Shown here: piece by piece, positions 42,359 to 58,099 of the stretch | Layout: every line of letters begins with the position of its first letter | How positions within the stretch are numbered: position 1 is the stretch's first letter | DNA from: Klebsormidium nitens | Taxonomy: Eukaryota > Plantae > Klebsormidiophyceae | Assembly (NCBI GenBank): GCA_000708835.1 | Contig: DF237482.1 | Span: forward strand, 1 to 62,046 | Direction: 5' to 3' | Length of the DNA: 62,046 bases | Made by a program: the position numbers and the translations under genes | Notes under the pieces: generated by a model | What the model was told of the DNA's origin: nothing | The model's input: the letters and a program-made list of their open reading frames with translations, nothing else | The model's database searches: none

Positions 42359-45300
42359 ATGGAGGCAGAAACATCAAAAGCACCACTGGACGAGTTGGTC
42401 TACTCTAGACAGTAAGTTGGCCATTCACTAAGGGCAACCCGGTGGATTGCTGCAACACGGTTGGAACCACACCTCCAAGAAGAGTTGTATAACGTGGTCT
42501 ATGGTTCGACTCCGTGGACCCCAACAGTTTACAGCCCACTCTCGTCTCTGGCGCCCCTTGCATTTTGTCAAAGAGGACACACGTCAGTTGGCATTGTGAA
42601 AGTTGAAACCACAGGTTGCGCTTGCACACGCTGAATCTATGATTGGCACGCGCATGATCATGAGAACGTGCCCTTGCATGTCTTATCTTGTTGCCAGATC
42701 ACACCAGGTGTGACACCAGGTGTGACACCAGGTCTATCTTGGTCAAGTCTGGGGGACTGTCGCCCCTGGATTTTGATAGATTGCGAGCAGTTTCGAAGTC
42801 GCCAAAAGTTTCTCTTTCAAAACCAGGCGTTGACGGAGCAATAAACCCTTTTATTGCATGGGGTGCCGGTCAAATATCATTTTGTTTACAGAAATTTGAC
42901 CCAATGCCGTGTGAGTTTAGTCCCTGATTATTCTTGTTTCACAGAGGCCTTGACTCTGTCTTGTTGCAGGATTCATGCACTGGGAAGGGATGCGACGCAG
43001 GCGATCGCAGTGAGCAGTGTGGTCATCATCGGCATGAAAGGAGTGGGCGCTGAGACGGGTGTGCGATCATTTCATATTTCTCTTGGAAATATCGCACATT
43101 TTGTAATGTTCTCTAACAAACTGGACTTACCAGTTGATTCTCAACCAATCACAACTACTCGTGGTTGTAATCATACATTTCTTTCGCAAGAATTTCATTG
43201 TAACATCCTTATAATATCAGAAGGAAAATAGTCATTGGTATTGTTGCCTGATGAAAGAAGGGTGTCTTTCTTTCTGTGGTTTACAAAGGGATCGGAAGGG
43301 GGGTGATCCGCCTACAAGTTGCCTGGTCTGGGTCCTGTCTTCGAAGCTTCCATGACTCTCTTGCCCATAACGAAGTTATTGTCATGGTCTTATCTGGTTG
43401 ACAACGAACGTGAGGTGCAAAGAGTACTTGTTTGAAAGCACCTGGAAACCTCCTTTTGAGATTCTTCGGTCTTCTGATGCCATGCTCGGGGGCCCTTTGG
43501 TCATTTTGTAAGTTTGCTAATATGTGAGATTGCTACGTGTTGATACTGGCTGTCGGCTGTTTGTTTGCAGCTAAGAACGTTATCCTTGCTGGCGTCAAGC
43601 AACTTACGCTGATCGATGGTGGGGTGGTGGGGCCCAGTGACCTCTCCTCTCAGGTGAGGAGGCTCTGAAACTTCGATCCCAGCAACATATAGCAAAGAAC
43701 TTACACACAATTTTCTTGCTGTGCTTGTACAGAAGAGTTCGTACTCAATGGCTCTTTCCATTGCTAAGTTTGCTTCTCAACTTTACGCAGAAGTTTTCCA
43801 AGCTCTTAGAACACCTTTTGAAGTCGTTCGCTCCTCATAGGGAGCCACACTGCGCCTATAGGATCAATATCTGCCAATGTAGAATAATCGCAGGCAGTCA
43901 TGACACCAAATTGTCCTGACAATCTCGCACAAGTCCACAATCCCTAGGCCCGTTTCAAAGGACCCGAATCTCACAAAGCAGTTACCGGTGAGAGTCAAAC
44001 TTGTTTTTGTCTGTTACTGAAACACCTTCGTCCGTTTGCCAGTTTCTTCTGCGAGAAGGAGATGTGGGCCTTGGCCGAGCGGCGGTCAGCGCAACTAGGC
44101 TTGGAGAGCTGAATGAGAGTGCGCACGTGCAAGCGGTCCAGGGGCCACTCACTGCAGAACTGCTGAAGAGCACTGAAGTAGGGACGATGCGGGCCTTCTT
44201 ATATCTTCCGGCTCCTCACTTACAGGATACCGAGATCAGGGTACTTGTAGGAAGCTGTTCGGTTTCGAAAATTCTTGCTTTCCAAGTGTATGTTAAGGCA
44301 AAAAGAGTCCTTGTCGGGTCCTTCAGATGGTAGCTTTGCTTGGCCGAGAGCGATTATTGAGATAAGAATCAACGTTTCATGTGGCAGGGTGGGTGCTTTT
44401 GAGGCTGGGTATTCTCTTAGAGCGCCTGCAGTGCGCACCCTTCCTTGTACTGCGGACTCGAACACTGACAGCAGATGACTTTTTGTCTTGACAGCCAAAG
44501 CATGGAGCGCAGGTGGTGATTGCTACTCAGGGAAGCTGGGACGAGTTGGCCGCGCTGAACTCACTGTGCCGCTCTAATGGCACACATTTCATCGCTGCGG
44601 TAAGCCTTTGCTACCATATTCAATAGATGCTCAACAACATCCTGGTCAAGACATCCGCAAATGGTGGTCAATTATCCTGTAAGCGCTTTCCGGCTGCAGC
44701 TGAGCTACTGCCTCTATTACTCCACCTTGGTCATATAGCTGTCCCTAACTTATATCGTTCCCCATTACTCCACCGCAGAAGCGCTCCGAACAGTGTTTCC
44801 AACTCCAACCACACACGAGCGGCTACGAACTGATCTAGATCTTTTAGAAGGGTCTGACAGATGTAGACCAGACGTTCCAGGAAATCTACAGCAGGCTAGA
44901 GTACTCAAAAAAAAAGATTCCCATCCGTTTCCCCCCGTCGATCTCAGGGCATCCACGGCCTCGCTGCTTTCGTCTTCGTCGACCTCGGGGAGAGCTTCGA
45001 AGTCAAGGACGCCACTGGTGAACCTTCGCCGACCGTCATGATAGAAAGCGTCACCCAGGTCAGCAGCCTTTGGCAAACTCAGATGTTATCTTTATCGTCG
45101 GAGCTCTATCCATAGACGCTTCCACATACTGCTTGGGTTATGCAAGCCCGTGCTCACAACTGGTCGATTCATTCTCTTGTGCGGAACGACCAGGAGGCAT
45201 AGCAGGCGGCGCTCGGGTTTTCAATGGGGTGGCAGTGGTTGACCGGTCAGAAGGGAGTACAACCAATAACCGCCTTCCTAAAGGACCTTTCCCATGGCAA

Positions 45301-48300
45301 ATGATTTGATGGTAGTATGACTCCCTGCTTGAGTCCTGATCGTCTCCGTTGCACCAGATTGCGATTGTGCTGGGGGCCCTTATAAAAGGTTCGTAGGGCA
45401 GAGATGGCGCTCTTAGGGTTCCTTTCATTGACACGCGGGTACGTCAACTGATCACAGGATCTTCCGGCGACTGTGACGGTCGTAGAGGAGCAGCGGCATG
45501 CTTTCGAGGACGGGGACTTTGCCAGCTTTTCCGGAATCAGGGGGATGACGCAGCTCAACGACGGACCCCCCCGGAGAGTGAGCGTCACGGGCAGCCACTC
45601 GTTCACTATCCCGGACGATACCCGCGAGTATGGGCGATACGTTTCAGGGGGGTACATCAGACGGGTAAGAGCTGTAAACAATTTCAACTGCCGTCTTGTC
45701 TTTCGTGGAACTTTACAAATCTGCCCTGCTCATCATAGAAGTTGAGTTTATAGGACACAGCGAGGCAGGAAGAAGTCGTTCCTCTGACCGATGGCAATGC
45801 TTCGCTCCAAAACAGGTCGGTCGGAAGTCACGTTTTGCTCCTTTCTTGGGTCACCAAGCTTCATCTTGAGTCCATTGTAGGGATGAGCTGGAGATCGCCT
45901 GTTGCACCGTGCAACGTGAAGAAGCCGTCTCTCTTTCGCCAGGATAACGGGCCTCACGAAGGATCTGGTATGTCACCTGTAGTAATTCAGCTCCACTGTC
46001 CTCATCACGGACATACGGTGATTGGCTTTGATTGCATAATCGCTTTGCACTGTTTTTGCAGTTACGACCCTCGAAGTTCCTCCACTTCAAGCCGTTAAAG
46101 GTGTCGATTGAGGCTCCAACCTTTGTCGAAAGGTGAGAACAACGTCTCCTTCAAAGTTGTATGGGCCACCAAACAGGATATTCGAGCAACTAAAGGGTGC
46201 AAAGGAAAAGTCCGAAAAGAAGCGCCTGCGCGATTGCATCTGGATTGATGCTTCTCCTAAACATTTGGGAACTTTCGTGTGGGTTGCACAACAGGGACTT
46301 CATGAAGCAACCGAAGAAGGTGCGGAAATATCAAGACCGTTGGGGCACGCAGAGCACCACGAGGCTTTGCTTCCCAAACAGCGCGCTTTGTATCTTTGCA
46401 AGCGCACAGAAGTCGCAAACGATCTGTGGCATCATGTCTTTATTCGTCGTGAGGCCGCTCTTATCATGAGGTTTCCAGATACCCTTTTCATGATGGGATA
46501 TTGAGAGTCTCATGGAGACCTTTTTAGCGCAAGTTCACTCTGCCCGAGGATTATCGGCACTGTGAGGTGTAACGAGCATCAATTGTCAAAACTTTGAGTC
46601 GCGGCTCCTCACCTGATTACAAAATGTGGAAATGTCGTGTTTTTCCTCATTTGCAGCGATCCAAGCAAGGTGACCCGCCCGGAGCTTCTGCACGCAGCAT
46701 TCCGCACGTTTCAGTCCGTCCAAGATGGATCTGGAAACGACTTGGCGCTCCCCCTATCTAGTGTGAGTTCGCCAATCCAGCGCCTCTCGAGAATAGTCTG
46801 GACCACCCTCCTATTTGAGAGCGTCCCAGAGTGTAACAAGCGCTCAAGAAATCATTACAACCATTCAAGAACGTTAGGTTTCAGGGGATTCAAAGGGTAT
46901 TCAGTCACTCTCAGTCCAGTCTGTTTCTACTTAGACGCCCTTTCACAACATGTTTGCTCATCAGTCGTCTGACAACGAGAGAGCTCTTGCTTTCTCTAAG
47001 AAAGCTCTCTGACGACCGGACACCTGTCTTGCAGGACCTGCTAGAGGACATTCACAATTCTGCGCAGTCTCTGCTCGACCGCCAGGCGTCGTCCAATCTC
47101 GCGACGTCCTCCGCGCCCCTTCGAACCGCCCGATCCGACCCCTCCTCCAAAACCCTGGCCCTTCTGCAGACTCTAGCCGCGTCTTGGGGCCAAGAACTTG
47201 CGCCGATGGCGGCGATAGTCGGAGGGATCGTGGCGCAAGAAGTCCTGAAAGCGGTGTCAGGGGTTATGACGCCAATTCAGCAGTGGCAATATCTGGACGC
47301 GTTCGAAGCGGCGCCGGATGACGTGGCGGCAGGCATGGAGGCCCCCGTGGAGGCGCGGTATGCGGCCCAGATTGGCGTGTTCGGGCAGCAAGTGCAGGTG
47401 AGCGGCGATTGTCGTCTATTTTATGGTTGACTCCATTCTTGGGCAGGGACCATGTGGTGGTTTTGATGGGATGTCAATCTGTTGCAAGCTGGCCGGGCAT
47501 GGGCCCCCGTTGAGCCGTGGAAAGCGGCGCAGATTGGCGTGTCCGGGCAGAAAGTGCAGGTGAGTAGCCTAGGTTCCATCTACTTTACTTTGAACTTGAA
47601 TTTTGGGCCGTTGAACCGCAGGATTTATATGCTGGATTCGACGAAGTCCTCGTTCTGCTGCGGTCTGGTTGAGGATTAGGCGTAATGTCAAAACTCTGAA
47701 AAGAATCGCACCACATGCATTGCAGACTGGCGCTGCAGCTCACTGTCCTTGCATTTACGACCCCGAGGTAGTCCCCTAAAGAGACAGGTTATTGCCAGGC
47801 TTCTGGCGCATGCGTTCATATCCAAGCAAGAGGCAGCCGGTTAGGTATCTCACAATCAGAAGTTTACTCTCAGCCAAGCTACCTTATAGCCTGGACTCGA
47901 AGCTGGGTATCACAATCTGCGGAAGATTCATTTGGGGTCGGCTGGTTGCAACTCCTCTTGGCTGAGAATTCTAGTGACCAGCTCTTTGCCTGCGCACTTG
48001 GAAGGTCGCACTTCGTATCTGCTCTCAGTCACATGGCCGTTTCTCGTAACGCCCCGACCCCCCACATCGCCACAAACTGCTCTCGCGAACTCTGCATCAA
48101 TGCTTACTCACCTCTCCGCCTGCAGGACGCCTTATCTGAGTTACGGTACCTGGTGGCCGGAGCCGGGGGCATCGGCTGCGAGCTGCTGAAGAACTTTGCG
48201 CTCATGGGGGTCGGCACGGGGAACGGCGGGAGAGTTACCGTCGCCGATGCGGACATCGTCGAACTTCCGAACCTCCCCGGGCAGTCGCTGTTCCGGAAAA

Positions 48301-51300
48301 GCGACGTGGGAAAGCCGAAAGCGGCGACGGCGGCGGAGGCTGTCAGGCAGATCAATCCTGCGGTGCACACGGCGGCTATCCAGGTCGGACTTCATGGGGT
48401 ATATTTTCTCAATTGTAGTCCTTGAAAGTATCTATGAGCCGTCTCTCTTACCTTTTTAAGGGGAGCTTCGTGTCATTTGTTTAGTCGCGAACCGAGGACC
48501 GAGAGCGGTTTCAAAGGAACGGGTGCAGTCGCACAGCTTTGTTCCGATTGTCTTCGGCGAGGTTCGCTTCATAGCTCCTGTCAAAGTATTGGCACCCCAG
48601 AAGGAGTAGAAAGGGACGGACTCGCTTCGTTTCTGCTGGATGCGACTCTTTTTCAAATAATCCTACGAACGGTCGGTGCTCGCTCTTGATCATTGAGTTC
48701 ACTTGGACCGTTCACCAACTCTAACATGGTTCCTTGCTTTCGAGCGCTGCATCTTAACTAACCACCGACTGTGAAGGACTCGTCTCTGAAGCTCCCACCA
48801 TCGTCTGAACGCCTCTGCCTGACACCAAAGGCTTTCTCTGTCTGGGTTCAGGAGCGGCTAGTTGCAGAAACGGAGGGCGATTTCGACTCGGCCTCCTTCT
48901 AGAAGCTGTCAAGACAGTGCAATTGATTTTTTTGCTTCCCTAAGCTCATACAAGCGCCCAAGATCCTTCAGCGACGGCTGCTTACAATTAGACGAAGGCT
49001 TCCCTGACGCGCAAAGTCTTTCTCCGTATCGGTTCAGGAGCGGCTCGCTGCTGAAACGGAGGGCCTGTTCGACTCGGCCTTCTTCGAGAAGCTCTCTGGG
49101 GTTTGCACGGCCGTCGACGACGGTTCGTCGCGGCTGTACATCGACGCCCGATGCGTGGCTTTCGGGAAGGCCATGATCGACGGGGGGAAGCTCGGAGCCA
49201 AGGGCAGCGTCCAGGTATGCATATGTTAGCCTGCTTTAAGTTTGTAGAGATTCATTGCGGCCTCACGAGTGAACTTTCCGATGTAAATTGACGCCCGGTG
49301 GGTGGCTTTCGGTGGCCCTATGATCGACGGGGGGAAGCTCGGAACCAAGGGCAGGGTCCAGGTATGCCTGGTAGCCTCGTTTCTTTTCCTGGACTCGATC
49401 ACGACGTCCTACACATCATCTGTTGTTCATGAAATTCCCCTTATTTGGTGCAAGTGACTGGGAGAAGCTCAGAGCAGCGTCAGGTGGTCGATAGCCTCGT
49501 TTCAGCTTCATTAGCGACCATGCTTTTTCTGGTTGGATGATTCTGGTTGACGGGGGATGCTCGGAACCACTGCACTCCCAAGAATGTCCGGATGGCAATT
49601 TGTAGAAAGGCTCCTTTTGCACCTCGAGTAACGCCACAGAATGCGTTCCTTGCTGGTCCTACAGCCGCAATTTCATTACCGGACACTCGAACGAACCGTC
49701 CAATGCATGGATAGTCGTGCTTGACGATCACACAAGTCAAAACTTAGGCTCACAACAAGTCAAACGAGTCGCCAATGGCCCTCCAGTATTAGATCTCTTT
49801 GTATTTCGCGCGCTGAAGACAAAAGCCGAACTGCTCAGCTGTTGATCAGATGTCGAACTCTCTCGCCGACTCTGCAGGTGTTTGTGCCGCACCAGTCGGA
49901 GATGTACGCGTCGACGCGTGACCCGTCGGAGCACCGCGAGTTCCAAATCTGCACGCTCAAGAACTTCCCGTATGCGAGCGAGCATACGCTGCAATGGGCG
50001 CTCGACATCTTCGAGGGGCTGTTTAAAGTGCGGCCAGCGGGCGTCAACGCGTATCTCTCCAAGTGAGTCTTGTTCAAGAGAACAGGGGTCGGGTTGCCAG
50101 GGTATTCATTCTCAGGCGTTTTTCCTGCTTTGCACTACGAGTGCCTTCCGGACAGGTACCTATATTGAAAAGGGAGTGGCGTTACTCGGCTAGTATGCTT
50201 CCTTTCGTGATCGCGGAAACGATCGTGCCTTTTTTGTATACAGAGTTCTCAAAACATTGTGGTAAACCCCTGTTAGTGTTCGGACCCCTTCAGACAAAGT
50301 CTTGCAGTCCATGATCAGGAACACTATGCTCTTGAACACGTAACATTCTAGACAGTCTAAAAACCAGTTCCCCGGCACCCCTGCCGATGCTGGAGGGTCC
50401 TTCTGCAGGCTCTCCAATCGTAAGTCTCAACAACGTACTGCGCTATACCTCTTATCCTCTCTGTTCGTTTACTTCAAGAAAAACTTCCATGAATCCTCGA
50501 CGGAGTTGGCAGCGGGTGAGGTTTTTGTACACCTTCTTCTGCAGGCGCGACATCATGGACGGCCTGCAGAGGAACTCCGTGCACGCTTGCCGACCCTGGC
50601 AAATTTGCAGAGCGCTTAAATCAGAGATTCTCAAAATCGTTTTCCACATAAAACCTCGTTTGTCCATACATCGGATTCCTACGAACGGCTTACAAGATGG
50701 CAGCAAACCGTTGTATTACGTTTTTGCAGGCGCGACTTTCTAGACGGCCTGAAGAAGAACTCTGCGGCGCGCCTGCCGACGCTGGAAAGCTTGCGGAGCG
50801 CTCTGGTAACGCAGCGGCCGCTCGGCCTCGACGCGTGCATCGCCTGGGCGCGCAACCAGTTCGAGGAGCTCTTCAGCAACAGCATCAAGCAGCTGACCTT
50901 CAACTTCGCTCCAGGTGCGCGGAGAGCGATTTTTTTCATTTTTGCACGTATTGCAGTCGTGTCGAAGTGATTCACTGCATCGTGTAAGCTTTTCTCATAT
51001 GGGGACTGTGATGCTCAGATGGGGTTGCGACTCTTTAGCAGCTTTACCAGGCCTCTGCTATCCTAAGCTCGACGTCCGGCTTAAAGCGCAGCCGGTGCCA
51101 TTGGTGTTCGTACTTATTCCTTGGTGCAGGACTTGGAAGCGCCACGATTTTTTTGCGACGTCGTTCAGGGCGTTCGAATTCGACAGAAGGCCCGTGATGC
51201 TAGCAAACCAACACTGCTAGTTGGAGCAGTGGTTTCCTCCACTTGATGCACGGAGTTCAGCGAACACAAAAACCATCACTGCATTGGCGTTCAAAGTCAC

Positions 51301-54300
51301 TTCAATCAGAGTTGTTGCCATCTGCCCGATTATGCGACGAATCTGCATAATGCTTGCCAAATCAACAACCAAATCAACAGAGTGTCGAACTGCCTCATTC
51401 CACAGGCATGACCACGTCCGCTGGAGCCCCGTTTTGGAGCGGCACGAAGCGTGCTCCGACGCCGCTCACGTTCGACGTGCTCGACTCGCTGCACCTCGAC
51501 TTCATCGTCGCCGCCGCAAACCTTCAGGTACAAGACCTAAGTCCAGTCTGCTTTGACTTGGTCACAGCGAAAGTGAAAGTTCAGCAAGCGGCTGATGGAT
51601 GCCGTCTTGTCTATTTTGTTCGCATGAAAACTGGTTGCTTGGACTTGCCTTTGTTGTTAGAGCATGGAGAACCTGCTGAGGGCTGTAATGTGTCGCTTGG
51701 AAAGGGCGTCTCATCTGCACCAGCACTGTGGAGGACCATGTGAACAACCGGATTTGCGAGTCCGGTTTGGAAGGTTGAGCGTGCCGGTAGGAAACATACT
51801 CACAAAGGATAAAACTTGCACGAGAGCTCGTTTTATGCTCCTGCATTCCCTCCACCGGTGTATCTCCTGGATTCTCTACCATAAGCAAGACACCTGAGTC
51901 CGCTTTGATAAGATTGAGAAGTTGGGTGAGGTCGAGAACCCTTGCATCTGAACCACCTGCTATTTGTGTTTCCAGGCATTACAGTCCCTTTCCTTTTGGC
52001 GGTGCATCCCTCCTAGGAGAGTTCCGTTGGTTTGAGGTCCGTAAGAAGTGCACATTCAAAGGACTATTCCAAGTATGACCTTCGACATAATTTTTTGTCC
52101 TGGTACATTTGAGAAGACCTTGAGGTTGACCATGAGCCTCTGAATCCCCCCAGGCTTCCGTGTACGGCCTGAAGGGGTCCCGCGACCGGGCGTTGTTTGC
52201 TGAGGCGGTGACGCGGGTCGAGGTCCCGCCGTTCGAGCCGAGGGAGGGGGTCAAGATCGCGGTTTCGGATGAAGCGGTAAGTCGGTCCAGTCCCAGGTTT
52301 ACGACGAGAGCGATCCCAGGTTTTCAAGCAATTCACGCCATCGTTACTCGGACTGCTTTCATGTCTTTCACCGGTTGTGAGGGAATCGAGCTCTTCTTGT
52401 CTCGACTGAGTTTCATAAGCAGAACGAGCAATCCGTTCGCGCTCTTAGACGCCGATTTTGACGACTGAAAAGGGGCTTCGTTTTGCGAGATACTTGCCCA
52501 AAGGAGTTTTGGTTCACGAACCACTTACGCGGTTCGTCCGTTCTTTTACGAAGTCTTTTTGACTGCCCACGAGTTTGTAAATTGCGTCTGAACGTGCTCA
52601 TTTGGATGCATTGTACGACAATGGATGGTGGTAGTAAAGGCTTCGGAAGGGGGGCTTTGACGGTTGGTCCTTTTGGGATGGAGATGCCTCCCATGTCCTC
52701 CTCTCCTTTCTGAGCCCCCTTGTAAGCACTAGTTTAAAAGGCCGGTTGATGTCTAATATTGACATCCTACAGGAAGTCTCCTTTTTGGAAAGCGAGTCTG
52801 ATTGTGTATTGATGGATGCTGTGACGAGCTCGGCACGCTCTTTCCTTAGTCTGATTGTGTGCATCGCCTAATACAAGCAAGCCGTTCGGTTTTCGAGATG
52901 CAGCATACTGTCCTTGTGGATCCGTTCTCTTTGTCGGGACCGGATGCAATCAAAAGTCACAATCGCCTTCCGCACTCGCAAGGTGCCAAATAGGAAGCCA
53001 GGCACTTGCGAACGAGGTTCATTCGGTTTGTTTGTCATTGTCGGGGTTTCTCTCCGATCCTCGGGCGTTCTTTTCAGGACAATGCTAGCAGTCTTACGAG
53101 TTAGACATCGAAAGCGGTCAGTGATCAACTATAGTTGTGCTCTTCTTTCTCGCTGGGCATCAAGGCTCCAACTTCGACTCCAGCAGCTCTAGCCTTTTTG
53201 GGAAGGAGTCCCTGCGCACCATCAGAGTAAAAATGGTCGTTTGACTGGATACCGAAGAGAGTCCAAGCACGCCTGCTCCGTTATGCGCGGATTGATGGAA
53301 GGGAGGTTTACCCCTGGTTGGAGGCTTCTCATCTGGGGCGCAGACCCTTCTTTTGAAAGGTCCTTTCTTGGCTGTGATGTCAGTCCCTTGAGACATGCTC
53401 TCACAGACATGCATTCGGTGAAGCCACGATAGTCAAGCGAGTATAGTTTCCTTACAGACCATTCCTTCAACATCTAAAGTTTGGACGCGCTTACTGAAGC
53501 TTTTGGGTTCCCTGCTCAGTGCTTCGTATTCGGCCCTCCCTTACTCTTAAGACCGGATTTGATAATGGGGTTTGATACTGAACCTGGACAAGCCTGCCAC
53601 TTTCTGGTTGGTGGTACGAAGGATTTTGTCAGCGGTTCCTGCAGTGTTGCAAGCGTCGCTGCGGATGCACAAATCTGACGGGTTTTCACACGCAGCAACC
53701 TTCCCTTCACTTGGCAAAGCTTTCCGTCGTGCATCTTGCCTGCGCAGTAGTAGATCCCCTTTGGCGTGCTCTAATGTTGCTGTTTCGAATTTGCGGTTCT
53801 GAGAAGCTTGAAGTAGCTTTGACTCATGAGCTGGCTCGGTAGCGCAACACAATAGCTTCCTCTGTGCACACCTTGGTCTGCGGTCGTGGCTATGATACAT
53901 TTGACGCTGAGCAATGAGCTCAAGCCGTTTCACCCGGTCTTGAAGCCAACTGAGTGCTTCTGCCGTTTGTTTTGTGCATCTCTGCTTTCGATTTTTGATC
54001 ATCCTCGCTCTTGTCCAAGTATGGTTCCCTGTGTTCGGGTCGGGAAGATCTGTTCGACACCGCGGAATGAGGGTCCCTTTCTCTTCTCTGCCTCTCGGCC
54101 GTTCCCGTGTTCTGACGCCGCCACAGTGCGATAGCTACTTATATCTTCTAGAGTCGTCTGGCCCCTTTGCTTTGGTGCCCGAGGCCTGACTGAACCAATG
54201 GAATGGAGCAGCCCTGCAAGACTGTCTGCCGTCGTCTCACCGAAAAGGCACACCGCTCAAGCTAGTGACATCCAGCTTCATATTCATTCTGCGACGTAGT

Positions 54301-57300
54301 TGCTGGTGGGTTTCTTTGACTGGCGCCATTGCACTGCTTATCCTGTTCCTAGATTGCTTTACCCACAGTGGCTTCTGGAGGACCTGCCTGGAAGAATCTT
54401 TTAAAACTCCTGGGTGTTCCATGTTGGGCCTTGAGTAACGCTTCCGGCTACAAGGTTCGTCACTCAAGCCTGAGGACGCAACCTCCCTATCAAGCGGTGC
54501 TTCCATGTCGCCCTATCAGATTTCAGCTACAAATGCGATTGACATTCCGAAAAGGCGATTGTGATATTTCAATCAAGCGGCCGCTGTGCGCCTCCAAGGC
54601 TCGTTTCCCTGTCATTGATGCTCCTATGGTATAAGTTCCCGGAGTATGTGGAATACGATACCAAAAGCTAGAACAGGTCTGTGCCGATTCTTCTGCTTGG
54701 AGAAATGCACGTCTTATTGGTCAAAGAAAGTGCTCTTACGGATCTCCGACCCGCTCAGTCCCCGTTCACTGCTCAACGGCCCACCTTTTGAGTTTTGATT
54801 ACTCTCACGGCGCCGCTTTAGTATATCTTGGAGTTTGCACTCTTATGCACCCTAAGCAAGGCTGGCGGTCAACCAGAGGATTCGTCTCAGATTAATCTGC
54901 TCGCTCTGAATGAAATCTGAAAGTGTGGCGTCTGAGTTGCTTTGGTAGAGGTGCCAGTAAATTGGCTGTGAAAGACCGCTTATTTGAGGTTGGCTCACGG
55001 CTGCACTCTTCTGGATGCCGTTCCACACCTTGCGATGTTTTCCATGTCTTCGCTCGTGCAGCGGGTCACGTTGCAAATATCGCTCCCTGTCCTACGTTGC
55101 AAACAACCGGCTCAATTGTTGTCCATTTGAAGTTGTTGGTCACTGGGTTGCTTGTCCCTTGGTCCCTGTGGCAGACGTTGCTTGTCATGCAAGTCGAAGG
55201 AAACCTGCCACCTTTCGCTCGTCTTGTCCAAGTTTATTGCATTCTGGTTGATACAGTCGGATACCGTTGAATCTGCCTAATTCGAGGAACTTTGTGAAAG
55301 TTGCTCTTTGCCCGGAGCAAATACTTGCTAGTCATTGGTCCTACTTGCAGCAGCTGCTCTTATGGCAATGATTCGGGTTCCTGCTTGGCCGCTGTTTGGT
55401 GGTCACTTGCCTATCGTGGATTGATGCCCTCCGATTCGCGTGTTTATGCAGTATGTGCACTCGCTGAACAGTTGACTACCTATTTTGCAGTGGCAGCTCC
55501 TATGAGCGCTTCTCTGTCTCTCGCTCGTCGAATTGCCTCTCCTCATTAGATAAGGATGGTTTGAGCAGCCTCTGTCTTTCTTCGAGCACCATTTCTGAGC
55601 CCAATCTACCACATACAGCTTCTCTCAGGAATCATGGCTCTGCTGATAGGTGGTCATTGTTCGAATCAATGCCTCAAACAGATGACGAAGTCCTTTCAGT
55701 GGCTAGTGTCTCAAATCAGCTGCCAGGCTATTTCCTGCCGTGATGACCTTGATTCTGAAGGTCGTCCAAGCTCCGACTTCGACCTTGATCGAGCTCCTTT
55801 TTGATGTGACTTATTCTGGTAAACGTCATCAGCGATCTGTGTCGCCACTTCGTCTTTGCATCCAGTACGGCTGGCAAAAACTCGGCTTGATAAAAGTGAG
55901 ATCCACACCCATCTCGTCTTCCCTGATTCTGTTCGGAGGCTCGAATCCTTTCTACCTCGCTTTTCTCTTCTCAGGCCTACAACCTCGTCTACAGTGCCGG
56001 CTCTCGACGGACACGATTCTTCTTTCTTGCCAACGTCCGCCTACGACTCACTCCGAACCAGCATGCGCTCTGTCAAACTCAAATAGAGCATCTCGAAGAT
56101 TGTTACGTGGAAGAGGCTTTCTTAAGACCATTTTTCTTCTTCTCGCAGGCCCGCGGTTTGGCCAGCGCCCCCGGCTCCGCCCTCGCCATCTCCGGAGGCC
56201 CCTCTCCGGACGCGGACGCCGCGTGCGAACACCTCCTGTCCGAAATGCCCACCCCCGCCAGCCTCGCCGGCTACCGGCTAACCGTTATCGACTACCAAAA
56301 GGACGACACGGACCGTTACCACCTAGACTTCGTTGCTGCCGCCGCGAACCTCCGGGCCCGAAACTACGGCATCCCCCCTGTTGATAAGCTGACGGCGCGG
56401 CTCATAGCCGGGCGGATCCTGCCGTCGGTTATCACGTCGGCGTCCGTCGTTGCGGGGCTTATGTGCCTGGAGCTGTACAAGCTGGTACAAAATAAGCCGC
56501 TGGGCGCTTATCGGCACTCGTACCTGAACCTGGCGCTCCCGTTGATGACGTCAGCGCAGCCGCTCGCGGCGGTCAAGACGGAGGTGCAGACCAGCCACGG
56601 GAAGCCGCTCGTGTGGACGCTGTGGGACAGGTGAGGGCACGGGGGGTTGGATCGTCTTGGTTTGCTAACCGTGACCCGTTAAGAAGTATTGTGTCAGGAA
56701 AGTGATGTCTTTCGAGCCTAACAGACCTCGTGTTGCGTCACTCGAAATATGTTGTATTACAGCGACAACAAACCGTCAGAACCGGTGGGTCGCAACTTTG
56801 CAATCTAAAAGACATTGTGTTTTGTTGTTGTCCTCGTCTCCTGTTACTCTCCAAGATCCGATTAGTTGAAGTCTCGCTCGAACACAACGTTTGTCTGAGT
56901 TTCTTGTGCAACCGGTTGCTGGAAGGCTCGAGACTGAGTGCGGTGGTCTTCAATCACAGATCAGGAGCAGGCAGTGCCCTCGCTTCAAGATTAATGCCTT
57001 GGCTTCAGAAGACGGCAGGACATCGGGTTTCAACGTCACGAGCAGTCGTAACGCTTGCGAAGTAATATAGGGAGCATCCGCACGGGCAACACTTTCAAAG
57101 GCGTTCGACTCTGCTGGTCGCTCCGCATCACCACATGGTGCCCACATCACGGCGACCAAGGAGTCCAAGTTCGGCTATAAGCCATCGCCGTGTTCGTGTT
57201 GGCTCTGCCACTCTCTTAAGAAGCAATTGACGACTTAGAATTTTCATTTCGCAGGTTCGAAATCGACGCGCGAAGCCTGACGCTGGCGCAGTTCCTGAAG

Positions 57301-58099
57301 GACTTCAAGGCTAAGGAAGGACTGGAAGTGTCCATGTTGTCGTATGGGCGGAGTTTACTGTACGCCGAGTTTTTGCCCAAGAAGAAGATGGCGGATCGGC
57401 TAACCATGACGCTCGTCGACCTCGTAAAGCAGGTGGGGCGGTCTCCTTTTTTTCAATTTGAAAAATGGTCTAGCGGCAGGCTAGCAATGTCCCCAGCCTG
57501 ATTTAGTTCTTGTCAATCTCGAGGTTTGGGGTTTGTTCCGGTCCGCCACAAGCGAAGGTCGTGCCTTAGGAGATGGATTCCAGAGGTGATTGTTTCTGAA
57601 CTTCGGCTCAGGAAAGGTTCGAAGCTGCTGCAAACTTCCTTTCCTTCCTTAACAGACTGGACTATAGCATCTACACAATTCAACAGCTCTCTCGTCTTGC
57701 GATTCGCTGAATTTCAGAGAAACCAACTCCCATTCGTCTGTTAAGCTTAATTAGCAAGTGGCAGGACTGGTGTCTCGTTCAGTCGGGTTCTCGCCCGATT
57801 TTTAAAGTTAATGAGTGCGAGCATCTCGGAGGGCACTTCAAGCTGCTACCTACCGGTCTCAATTCTCTCTTTGAACTTTCCCGCAATCCCAACAATTGGG
57901 TCCTTCCTTATCCAAACACAGCCTTTTCGTTATCCGGAGCACCTTTTTGGGTGAGTAAAGCAACCCTGCTTCGGTCTTCCTGCAGGTGGCCAAGGCGAAG
58001 GTGCTGGACACGGAGACGCGGCTGAGTTTTTCGATCTCGTGCAGTGACGCAAACGATGACGACGTGGAGGTGCCTGACGTCATCGTGCGGATCAATTGA
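42359..58099 (+). CDS. Ubiquitin-activating enzyme E1 (UBA1-type architecture), divergent paralogue, ~1042 aa
   Basis: 19 phase-compatible exons: 42359-42411, 42970-43058, 43571-43653, 44043-44177, 44513-44599, 44948-45058, 45458-45664, 46062-46132, 46657-46762, 47035-47397, 48126-48383, 49038-49214, 49878-50062, 50730-50914, 51406-51527, 52154-52276, 56149-56630, 57255-57432, 57986-58099. Motifs [27 protein letters not shown], catalytic [35 protein letters not shown] with WTLWDRF and C-terminal DVEVP. Confidence 0.93.
42701..42733. repeat. 12-bp quasi-palindromic tandem repeat (acaccaggtgtg x~2.75) in E1 intron 1
   Basis: acaccaggtgtg acaccaggtgtg acaccaggt; each unit is ACACC-A-GGTGT. Confidence 0.85.

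Follow-up and report, generated by a model that had tools for sequence, protein, structure and literature searches.

A ubiquitin-activating enzyme gene of Klebsormidium nitens and the case for an Arg-less E1 lineage apart from canonical green-plant UBA1

The described ubiquitin-type activating enzymes (E1) closest to the gene considered here are canonical UBA1 (human UBA1, yeast Uba1, and plant UBA1/UBA2), UBA6 (the animal E1 of ubiquitin and FAT10), and UBA7 (the vertebrate E1 of ISG15). Plant ubiquitin biology rests on Arabidopsis, which has canonical UBA1 and UBA2 only. Here we analyze a UBA1-type E1 gene of the streptophyte alga Klebsormidium nitens; the window, that is, the whole stretch of DNA analyzed, is the full 62,046-bp record DF237482.1 of assembly GCA_000708835.1, and all coordinates are in record numbering. 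We assign the encoded protein to a group provisionally named clade X, the Arg-less streptophyte E1, which is defined by the motif ICT[LV][KR]NFPY[AS].EH, by N[LY]xxQ without the Arg, and by clade membership; the K. nitens E1 carries the motif, lacks the Arg, and falls within the clade in the trees. That clade X is another E1 lineage, separate from the canonical UBA1 of green plants, is well supported by sequence comparison, and the result points to a second conserved, expressed ubiquitin-type E1 in the streptophyte algae and in bryophytes, lycophytes, ferns, and gymnosperms. If so, most plant lineages would possess an unstudied entry point to the conjugation of ubiquitin or ubiquitin-like proteins (Ubl) that was lost toward the flowering plants.

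Like canonical UBA1, the K. nitens protein is a six-domain monomer with a ubiquitin-fold domain (UFD), an Arg finger in the inactive domain, the ATP/Mg ligands, and the catalytic Cys in a P/Q-x-C-T-L-K-N-F-P context, at 39–44% full-length identity. Unlike it, the protein falls in a separate clade and has Gly493 for the Arg of SNLxRQ and DGGK.G in place of ESGT.G; it differs from plant UBA1 also in the absence of the PMCT[VL] motif, of DDDVIEKSNLSRQF, and of the N-terminal extension. UBA6 resembles X in being a second ubiquitin-type E1 lineage alongside UBA1, and a sister relationship of the two is not rejected (see below), but UBA6 has SFPA where X has NFPY, keeps NLNRQF, and has exchanged the Gln of G.VQV, present in both X and UBA1, for Glu. 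UBA7 shares the domain architecture of X but nests with vertebrate UBA1, keeps the Arg, and shows changes at the positions that bind the ubiquitin tail. A likeness of a different kind is to the degenerate adenylation halves (the inactive domain of UBA1, NAE1, and SAE1), in which nucleotide-binding residues were lost from a MoeB/ThiF fold: in the domain 1 alignments, the X stretch PNLPGQS resembles DLSSQF of the inactive domain. In contrast to these halves, X keeps most of the ATP/Mg ligands and has the Cys domain on the same half, so it is not a plain inactive domain.

The Klebsormidium E1 gene and its catalytic-cysteine exon

The gene model combines stop-free segments, tblastn searches with the closest relatives, and splice joints from RNA contigs. 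It comprises 19 exons, all introns being GT-AG, and encodes 1048 amino acids (aa); the modelled protein has exactly the sequence of GAQ89535.1 ("Ubiquitin activating enzyme [Klebsormidium nitens]"), and the public gene call spans the same range. The parts of the gene to which the comparisons below refer are the following (residues were matched by alignment to human UBA1).

42359..58099, + strand: full E1 coding sequence in 19 exons; encodes the 1048 aa of GAQ89535.1
42359..42411, + strand: exon 1, aa 1–18; start ATG; inactive-domain LDELVYSRQ with Arg17 at 42407–09; GT donor
45458..45664, + strand: exon 7, aa 193–261; FCCH domain (Pfam PF16190 over aa 195–260)
48126..48383, + strand: exon 11, aa 442–527; active adenylation domain (contig joints; alignment to human UBA1)
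48159–48182, + strand: G-loop GAGGIGCE, in exon 11
48267–48287, + strand: PNLPGQS, in exon 11; Asn490 at 48270–72; Gly493 at 48279–81 replaces human Arg515
48318–20, + strand: Lys506, in exon 11, equivalent to human K528
49038..49214, + strand: exon 12, aa 528–586; contig joints; AVDD with Asp554 at 49116–18 (human Asp576)
49179–49208, + strand: DGGK-type stretch, in exon 12, standing where canonical UBA1 has ESGTLGTKGN
49878..50062, + strand: exon 13, aa 587–648; catalytic Cys611, TGC at 49950–52; contig joints
50730..50914, + strand: exon 14, aa 648–710; SCCH domain (contig joints, Pfam)
56149..56630, + strand: exon 17, aa 792–952; last part of SCCH and latter half of the active adenylation domain
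57255..57432, + strand: exon 18, aa 952–1011; UFD (gene model, Pfam)

The stretch at 49878–50062 on the forward strand carries the catalytic Cys and is an exon of a UBA1-type E1 gene that is full-length, intact, and expressed. An earlier note, made from the letters of the DNA, had read it as an E1 catalytic region of non-plant type with the Cys codon at 49950–49952, and this reading is confirmed by the stop-free translation, by the splice borders (ag/GT and AAG/gtgagt), by the spliced contigs, and by matches to chains of solved structures. Exon 13 matches the catalytic-Cys regions of solved UBA1, UBA6, and UBA7 (E values, 7e-16 to 1e-5); the top scores are those of the UBA1 chains of S. pombe and human, and UBA6 and UBA7 come lower. 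Cys611 lies in ICTLKNFPY, within the conserved CT(L/V)xxFP context, and ICTLKNFP is the widespread eukaryotic form of the catalytic motif. Conifer and angiosperm UBA1 read APMCT[VL] and UBA6 reads CTLKSFPA.IEHTIQWA, and the comparison motifs that the note had given for plant UBA1, animal UBA1, and UBA6 agree with the real sequences, human and insect proteins standing for animal UBA1. In the motif table, which spans X sequences together with UBA1, UBA6, and UBA7 rows from outside the clade, both green-plant UBA1 signatures, PMCT[VL] and DDDVIEKSNLSRQFLFR, are missing from the K. nitens E1.

The rest of the protein is that of a complete E1. Pfam matches above the cutoff (ThiF in two stretches, E1_FCCH, E1_4HB, UBA_E1_SCCH, and E1_UFD) give the full order of inactive adenylation domain, FCCH, four-helix bundle, active adenylation domain, SCCH, and UFD. 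The TIGR01408 (Ube1) model scores 955.9 bits over aa 10–1046 (cutoff 750.05), compared with 1595.5 bits for the canonical UBA1 of Wollemia. Matches to UBA1 structures in the PDB reach E=8e-57 across the adenylation core, and the PDB bit scores rank UBA1 above UBA7 and UBA7 above UBA6.

Contigs of 1.8–3.5 kb from four public runs (four studies) cover exons 10–16 minus the introns, with six GT..AG joints, and the borders of exon 13 (49214/49878 and 50062/50730) are used exactly in spliced contigs of all four runs. These six joints, at which introns 10–15 are removed, show that the gene is transcribed and that its splicing agrees with the model; the RNA nature of the four runs is itself deduced from the splicing, and the contigs carry no expression level. 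One run (X1) additionally yields low-depth contigs (depth 6–11 vs about 290 for the spliced form) that span intron sequence at 48675–49022, 50886–51432, and 51829–52119; these probably represent unspliced or intron-retaining transcripts.

Clade X: members, phylogeny, and coexistence with UBA1

An exhaustive, profile-free search with exon 17 produced a small set of sequences clearly ahead of the bulk of E1s from eukaryotes: Mesotaenium (64% identity), Spirogloea (61%), a transcriptome protein (55%), Chlorokybus (52%), and Mesostigma (49%), with Coleochaete also in the set. Full-length searches with the Spirogloea, K. nitens, and Ginkgo proteins were run as well, with the 8000 word-richest candidates scored for each. 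The K. nitens and Ginkgo queries added algal and bryophyte members (Chara braunii, two species of Riccia, Marchantia paleacea, Calypogeia, Physcomitrium, and Ceratodon) and vascular ones (Selaginella, Diphasiastrum, two species of Adiantum, Ceratopteris, Ginkgo Gb_11430, and Cryptomeria japonica). Members of the clade score 1014–1158 bits to the K. nitens protein, and any animal, fungal, or protist UBA1 at most 872 bits. Absences from the full-length searches are soft because each query missed members that others found. Among the 8000 word-richest candidates, the Ginkgo query returned from flowering plants only canonical UBA1s at 34–36% identity (Wolffia, Spirodela), where an angiosperm orthologue of Ginkgo X would be expected near 70%; judging from this comparison, clade X appears to be absent from flowering plants. 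The presence of X in Cryptomeria and in Zygnematophyceae rules out a link with motile sperm. We found no description of the family or its accessions in the searchable full-text literature, and a 2024 review on E1 evolution does not mention it.

Three trees were built: FastTree with 89 rows, a quick IQ-TREE run with 62 rows under LG+C20 with posterior mean site frequencies (PMSF), and a careful IQ-TREE run with 42 rows (support given as ultrafast bootstrap, UFBoot, and Shimodaira-Hasegawa-like approximate likelihood ratio test, SH-aLRT). All three agree in placing streptophyte X and Cymbomonas in one clade (100/100, stem length 0.45), which Diacronema joins in the larger set. Inside X, Chlorokybus and Mesostigma branch first, followed by Chara, Klebsormidium, Coleochaete, and Zygnematophyceae, and then by the land-plant group (100/100). 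The canonical UBA1s of green plants, sampled from Wollemia, from two angiosperms, and from algae (three sequences), form a clade of their own (100/99) with X outside. UBA6 is separate at 100/100, with X apart from it in the free trees, and UBA7 is placed with vertebrate UBA1; the trees thus rule out a UBA7 identity of X.

Approximately unbiased (AU) tests of constrained topologies rejected the union of X with the UBA1 of land plants alone, which stands for nesting or for a duplication confined to streptophytes (p=0.0018, ΔlnL 109). There was no rejection when X was constrained with the whole canonical green clade (p=0.279) or with UBA6 (p=0.514), the latter tree having a likelihood 0.32 units above the free tree. 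One conserved column is exclusive to X and UBA6 and none to X and green UBA1, and in 15 columns X alone deviates from all other groups; the counts of one and zero do not resolve the choice between these two placements.

The earlier note had proposed a second E1 lineage kept alongside the standard plant UBA1 and, as a check, a phylogeny with UBA1, UBA6, and UBA7. In that phylogeny X is a separate clade with full support and its nesting with land-plant UBA1 is rejected; together with an identity of 39% between the K. nitens E1 and the conifer (Wollemia) UBA1, this supports the core of the proposal, a lineage distinct from standard plant UBA1. The other origin that the note allowed, a transferred lineage, is not supported: the branching of X roughly matches the streptophyte species tree and therefore indicates vertical inheritance, not transfer. 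Both lineages are seen within conifers, in different species, canonical UBA1 in Wollemia and X in Cryptomeria, and Ginkgo has X as well. The canonical clade holds conifer and algal sequences and, therefore, the canonical lineage must have passed through the streptophyte-algal grade beside X.

Sequences of two organisms outside the streptophytes touch on the age of the lineage. The prasinophyte Cymbomonas tetramitiformis (P0351) groups with X at 100/100; the haptophyte Diacronema lutheri (P0101/P0211) also groups with X, on a very long branch. These sequences hint that the X lineage may be older than the split of chlorophytes and streptophytes, or may have moved with a green endosymbiont.

The nucleotide pocket and the proposed function

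The K. nitens protein retains the G-loop (GAGGIGCE), the ADAD form of the DxD motif, Asn490 (human N512), Lys506 (K528), the Mg-binding Asp554 (D576), the inactive-domain Arg17 of YSRQ, and Cys611. It differs at human Arg515: SNLNRQF becomes PNLPGQS, with Gly493 in place of the Arg. Only 1 of the 25 X sequences, that of Chlorokybus, keeps the SNLxRQ Arg, as does the related Cymbomonas; in the others, the position is occupied by G, S, T, N, D, or A. In addition, ESGTLGTKGN is replaced by DGGK[HL]G.KGS, which introduces a new Lys (Lys578 in K. nitens), and the land-plant X proteins further show FLFR changed to LLYQ and YSRQ to YSRL. Around the catalytic Cys, the stretch ICT[LV][KR]NFPY..EHT..WA ranks with the best-conserved regions of X. 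Two further residues, the Gln of G.VQV and the Asp of RDPPE, are likewise conserved in X and altered in UBA6 and UBA7; they match Gln576 and Asp591 of yeast Uba1, which hold Arg72 of ubiquitin. The conservation of these tail-binding positions therefore points to ubiquitin or a ubiquitin-tailed protein as the substrate rather than a different one.

The reading that we favor, and consider rather probable, is that X is a working ubiquitin-type E1 with a remodelled nucleotide pocket that acts beside canonical UBA1. Under this proposal, ATP-Mg would be bound through the retained residues, perhaps aided by the new Lys578 of DGGK[HL]G; a ubiquitin-type C-terminus would be adenylated, then loaded onto Cys611, and finally handed over through the UFD to a conjugating enzyme (E2), with altered nucleotide kinetics. 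The likely substrate would be ubiquitin or else a protein whose tail resembles that of ubiquitin, and X would serve as a second, specialized entry point beside canonical UBA1, as UBA6 does in animals. The family-wide loss of the Arg makes X a natural test case for the rewiring or abandonment of E1 adenylation chemistry, and Marchantia and Physcomitrium, both genetically tractable, belong to lineages that carry it.

Several observations speak against this assignment. All UBA1, UBA6, and UBA7 rows aligned from outside the clade have the SNLxRQ Arg (R515 in human, R481 in yeast). This Arg contacts the ATP phosphates, and its loss, along with the land-plant change of FLFR to LLYQ, could abolish adenylation. 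Compensation by Lys578 is not established because Chara and Mesostigma have neither this Lys nor the Arg. A single-sequence AlphaFold model was unusable for the geometry of the ATP pocket (predicted local distance difference test score, pLDDT, 34.6). A canonical UBA1 of K. nitens was not retrieved by look-ups of sequences, words, and literature, which did not cover the rest of the genome.

The first of these points is the core of the main alternative, namely, that X is a pseudo-E1, which no longer adenylates, the phosphate-binding Arg being gone, and functions as a non-catalytic or partly catalytic scaffold, an E2 regulator, or an acceptor in trans. We regard this as somewhat unlikely. The replacement of the Arg in all X proteins except that of Chlorokybus, the accompanying changes of FLFR, ESGT, and YSRQ, and the TIGR01408 scores of 956–968 bits, against 1596 for canonical UBA1, would be expected of such a protein. 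Yet X keeps the G-loop and DxD, the Asn and Lys, the Asp that binds Mg, and the Arg of the inactive domain, few stretches in the clade are better conserved than the catalytic Cys motif, and the full length, including the UFD, is maintained from algae to conifers; therefore, an enzyme with a working cycle fits better than a scaffold. The failure to retrieve a canonical UBA1 bears on a different alternative, namely, that the gene is the sole, fast-evolving UBA1 orthologue of K. nitens and that there is no second lineage. The placement of X as the sister of all canonical green UBA1s, which is not rejected, is also compatible with this alternative. It is very unlikely given that the same clade is found in conifers, Ginkgo, ferns, lycophytes, and bryophytes, that the distant conifer UBA1 falls, with algal sequences, into a different, fully supported clade, and that nesting with land-plant UBA1 is rejected.

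As to the origin of X, it is extremely improbable that Klebsormidium acquired by horizontal transfer a UBA1 from outside the plants, be it from an animal, a fungus, or a protist: the catalytic motif is opisthokont-like and the best named matches outside the clade are animal and fungal UBA1s, but ICTLKNFP is widespread in eukaryotes, the gene has a 19-exon spliceosomal structure, and its nearest relatives are all streptophytes, which branch roughly as the species do. More deserving of attention, although in our estimate unlikely, is the possibility that X corresponds in the green lineage to UBA6 of animals and is thus an old paralogue of eukaryotes, not a green duplicate of UBA1. The slightly higher likelihood under the UBA6 constraint is consistent with it, and both X and UBA6 are second ubiquitin-type E1s that coexist with UBA1. 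However, the stems of both groups are long (0.45 and 0.85), so that attraction between them is likely; a single conserved column is exclusive to the two, the PDB ranking puts UBA6 behind UBA1 and UBA7, the CTLKSFP motif is missing in X, and a sister relationship of X to green UBA1 is equally unrejected. It is likewise doubtful, if conceivable, that X constitutes a third class of ubiquitin-type E1 in the broadest sense, that is, an old paralogue, possibly sister to UBA6, which would have been kept by non-flowering streptophytes and lost by angiosperms, would feed its own E2/Ubl branch, and would have an ATP pocket without the Arg of NLxRQ.

Other features of the locus and of E1 homologs

The remaining exons of the gene, all on the forward strand, are listed below together with four decayed copies of exon-intron junctions within its introns.

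42970..43058, + strand: exon 2, aa 18–48; AG/GT borders
43571..43653, + strand: exon 3, aa 48–75; gene model
44043..44177, + strand: exon 4, aa 76–120; gene model
44495..44599, + strand: exon 5, aa 121–155; acceptor picked by the pyrimidine tract, matching the public protein
44948..45058, + strand: exon 6, aa 156–192; gene model
46062..46132, + strand: exon 8, aa 262–285; gene model
46657..46762, + strand: exon 9, aa 285–320; 3' end agrees with the loose end of the RNA contigs, GGAAACGACTTGGCGCTCCCCCTATCTAGT
47035..47397, + strand: exon 10, aa 321–441; spliced contigs of four runs
51406..51527, + strand: exon 15, aa 710–750; contig joints
52154..52276, + strand: exon 16, aa 751–791, followed by the 3.9-kb intron; the loose end of the contigs, CCCGCGGTTTGG, equals the start of exon 17
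57986..58099, + strand: exon 19, aa 1012–1048 and the stop codon; gene model
47502..47564, + strand: decayed copy (87%) of the end of exon 10 with its donor, in intron 10; unused in RNA contigs
48826..48910, + strand: decayed copy (85%) of the acceptor region of exon 12, in intron 11; unused
49282..49367, + strand: decayed copy (86%) of the end of exon 12 with its donor, in intron 12; unused
50537..50577, + strand: decayed copy (83%) of the acceptor and start of exon 14, in intron 13; unused

The decayed copies stem from four separate tandem duplications (47340–47564, 48826–49096, 49135–49367, and 50537–50762), with a spacing of 147–186 bp and an identity of 83–87%. Each duplication lies across a border between exon and intron of the E1 gene and has left a decayed "decoy" splice site with an exon fragment in introns 10–13; only one copy of each duplicated junction is used in the spliced RNA contigs. 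Intron 16 (52277–56148) is 3.9 kb long, compared with about 270–730 bp for the other introns, and the public record calls no gene inside it. In the public annotation, the genes called upstream (encoding a DUF1681 protein, a MaoC dehydratase, and an At4g08330-like protein) include no Ubl or E2, and none is called downstream. A 129-aa fragment, P0001, on a 23-kb Logan contig is 98% identical to exon 17 and presumably comes from a second Klebsormidium strain or species with the same gene.

Unusual domain combinations were observed among other E1 homologs. Two metagenomic proteins of 1391 and 1581 aa (P0390 and P0391) combine E1 domains (ThiF, SCCH, and FCCH) with the UQ_con (E2) Pfam domain and are possible E1-E2 fusions, as judged from their domain content. 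Two fungal UBA1 entries of about 1420 aa (P0165 and P0166) carry extra GST domains (PF13409 and PF13410) and may represent either real fusions or merged gene models.

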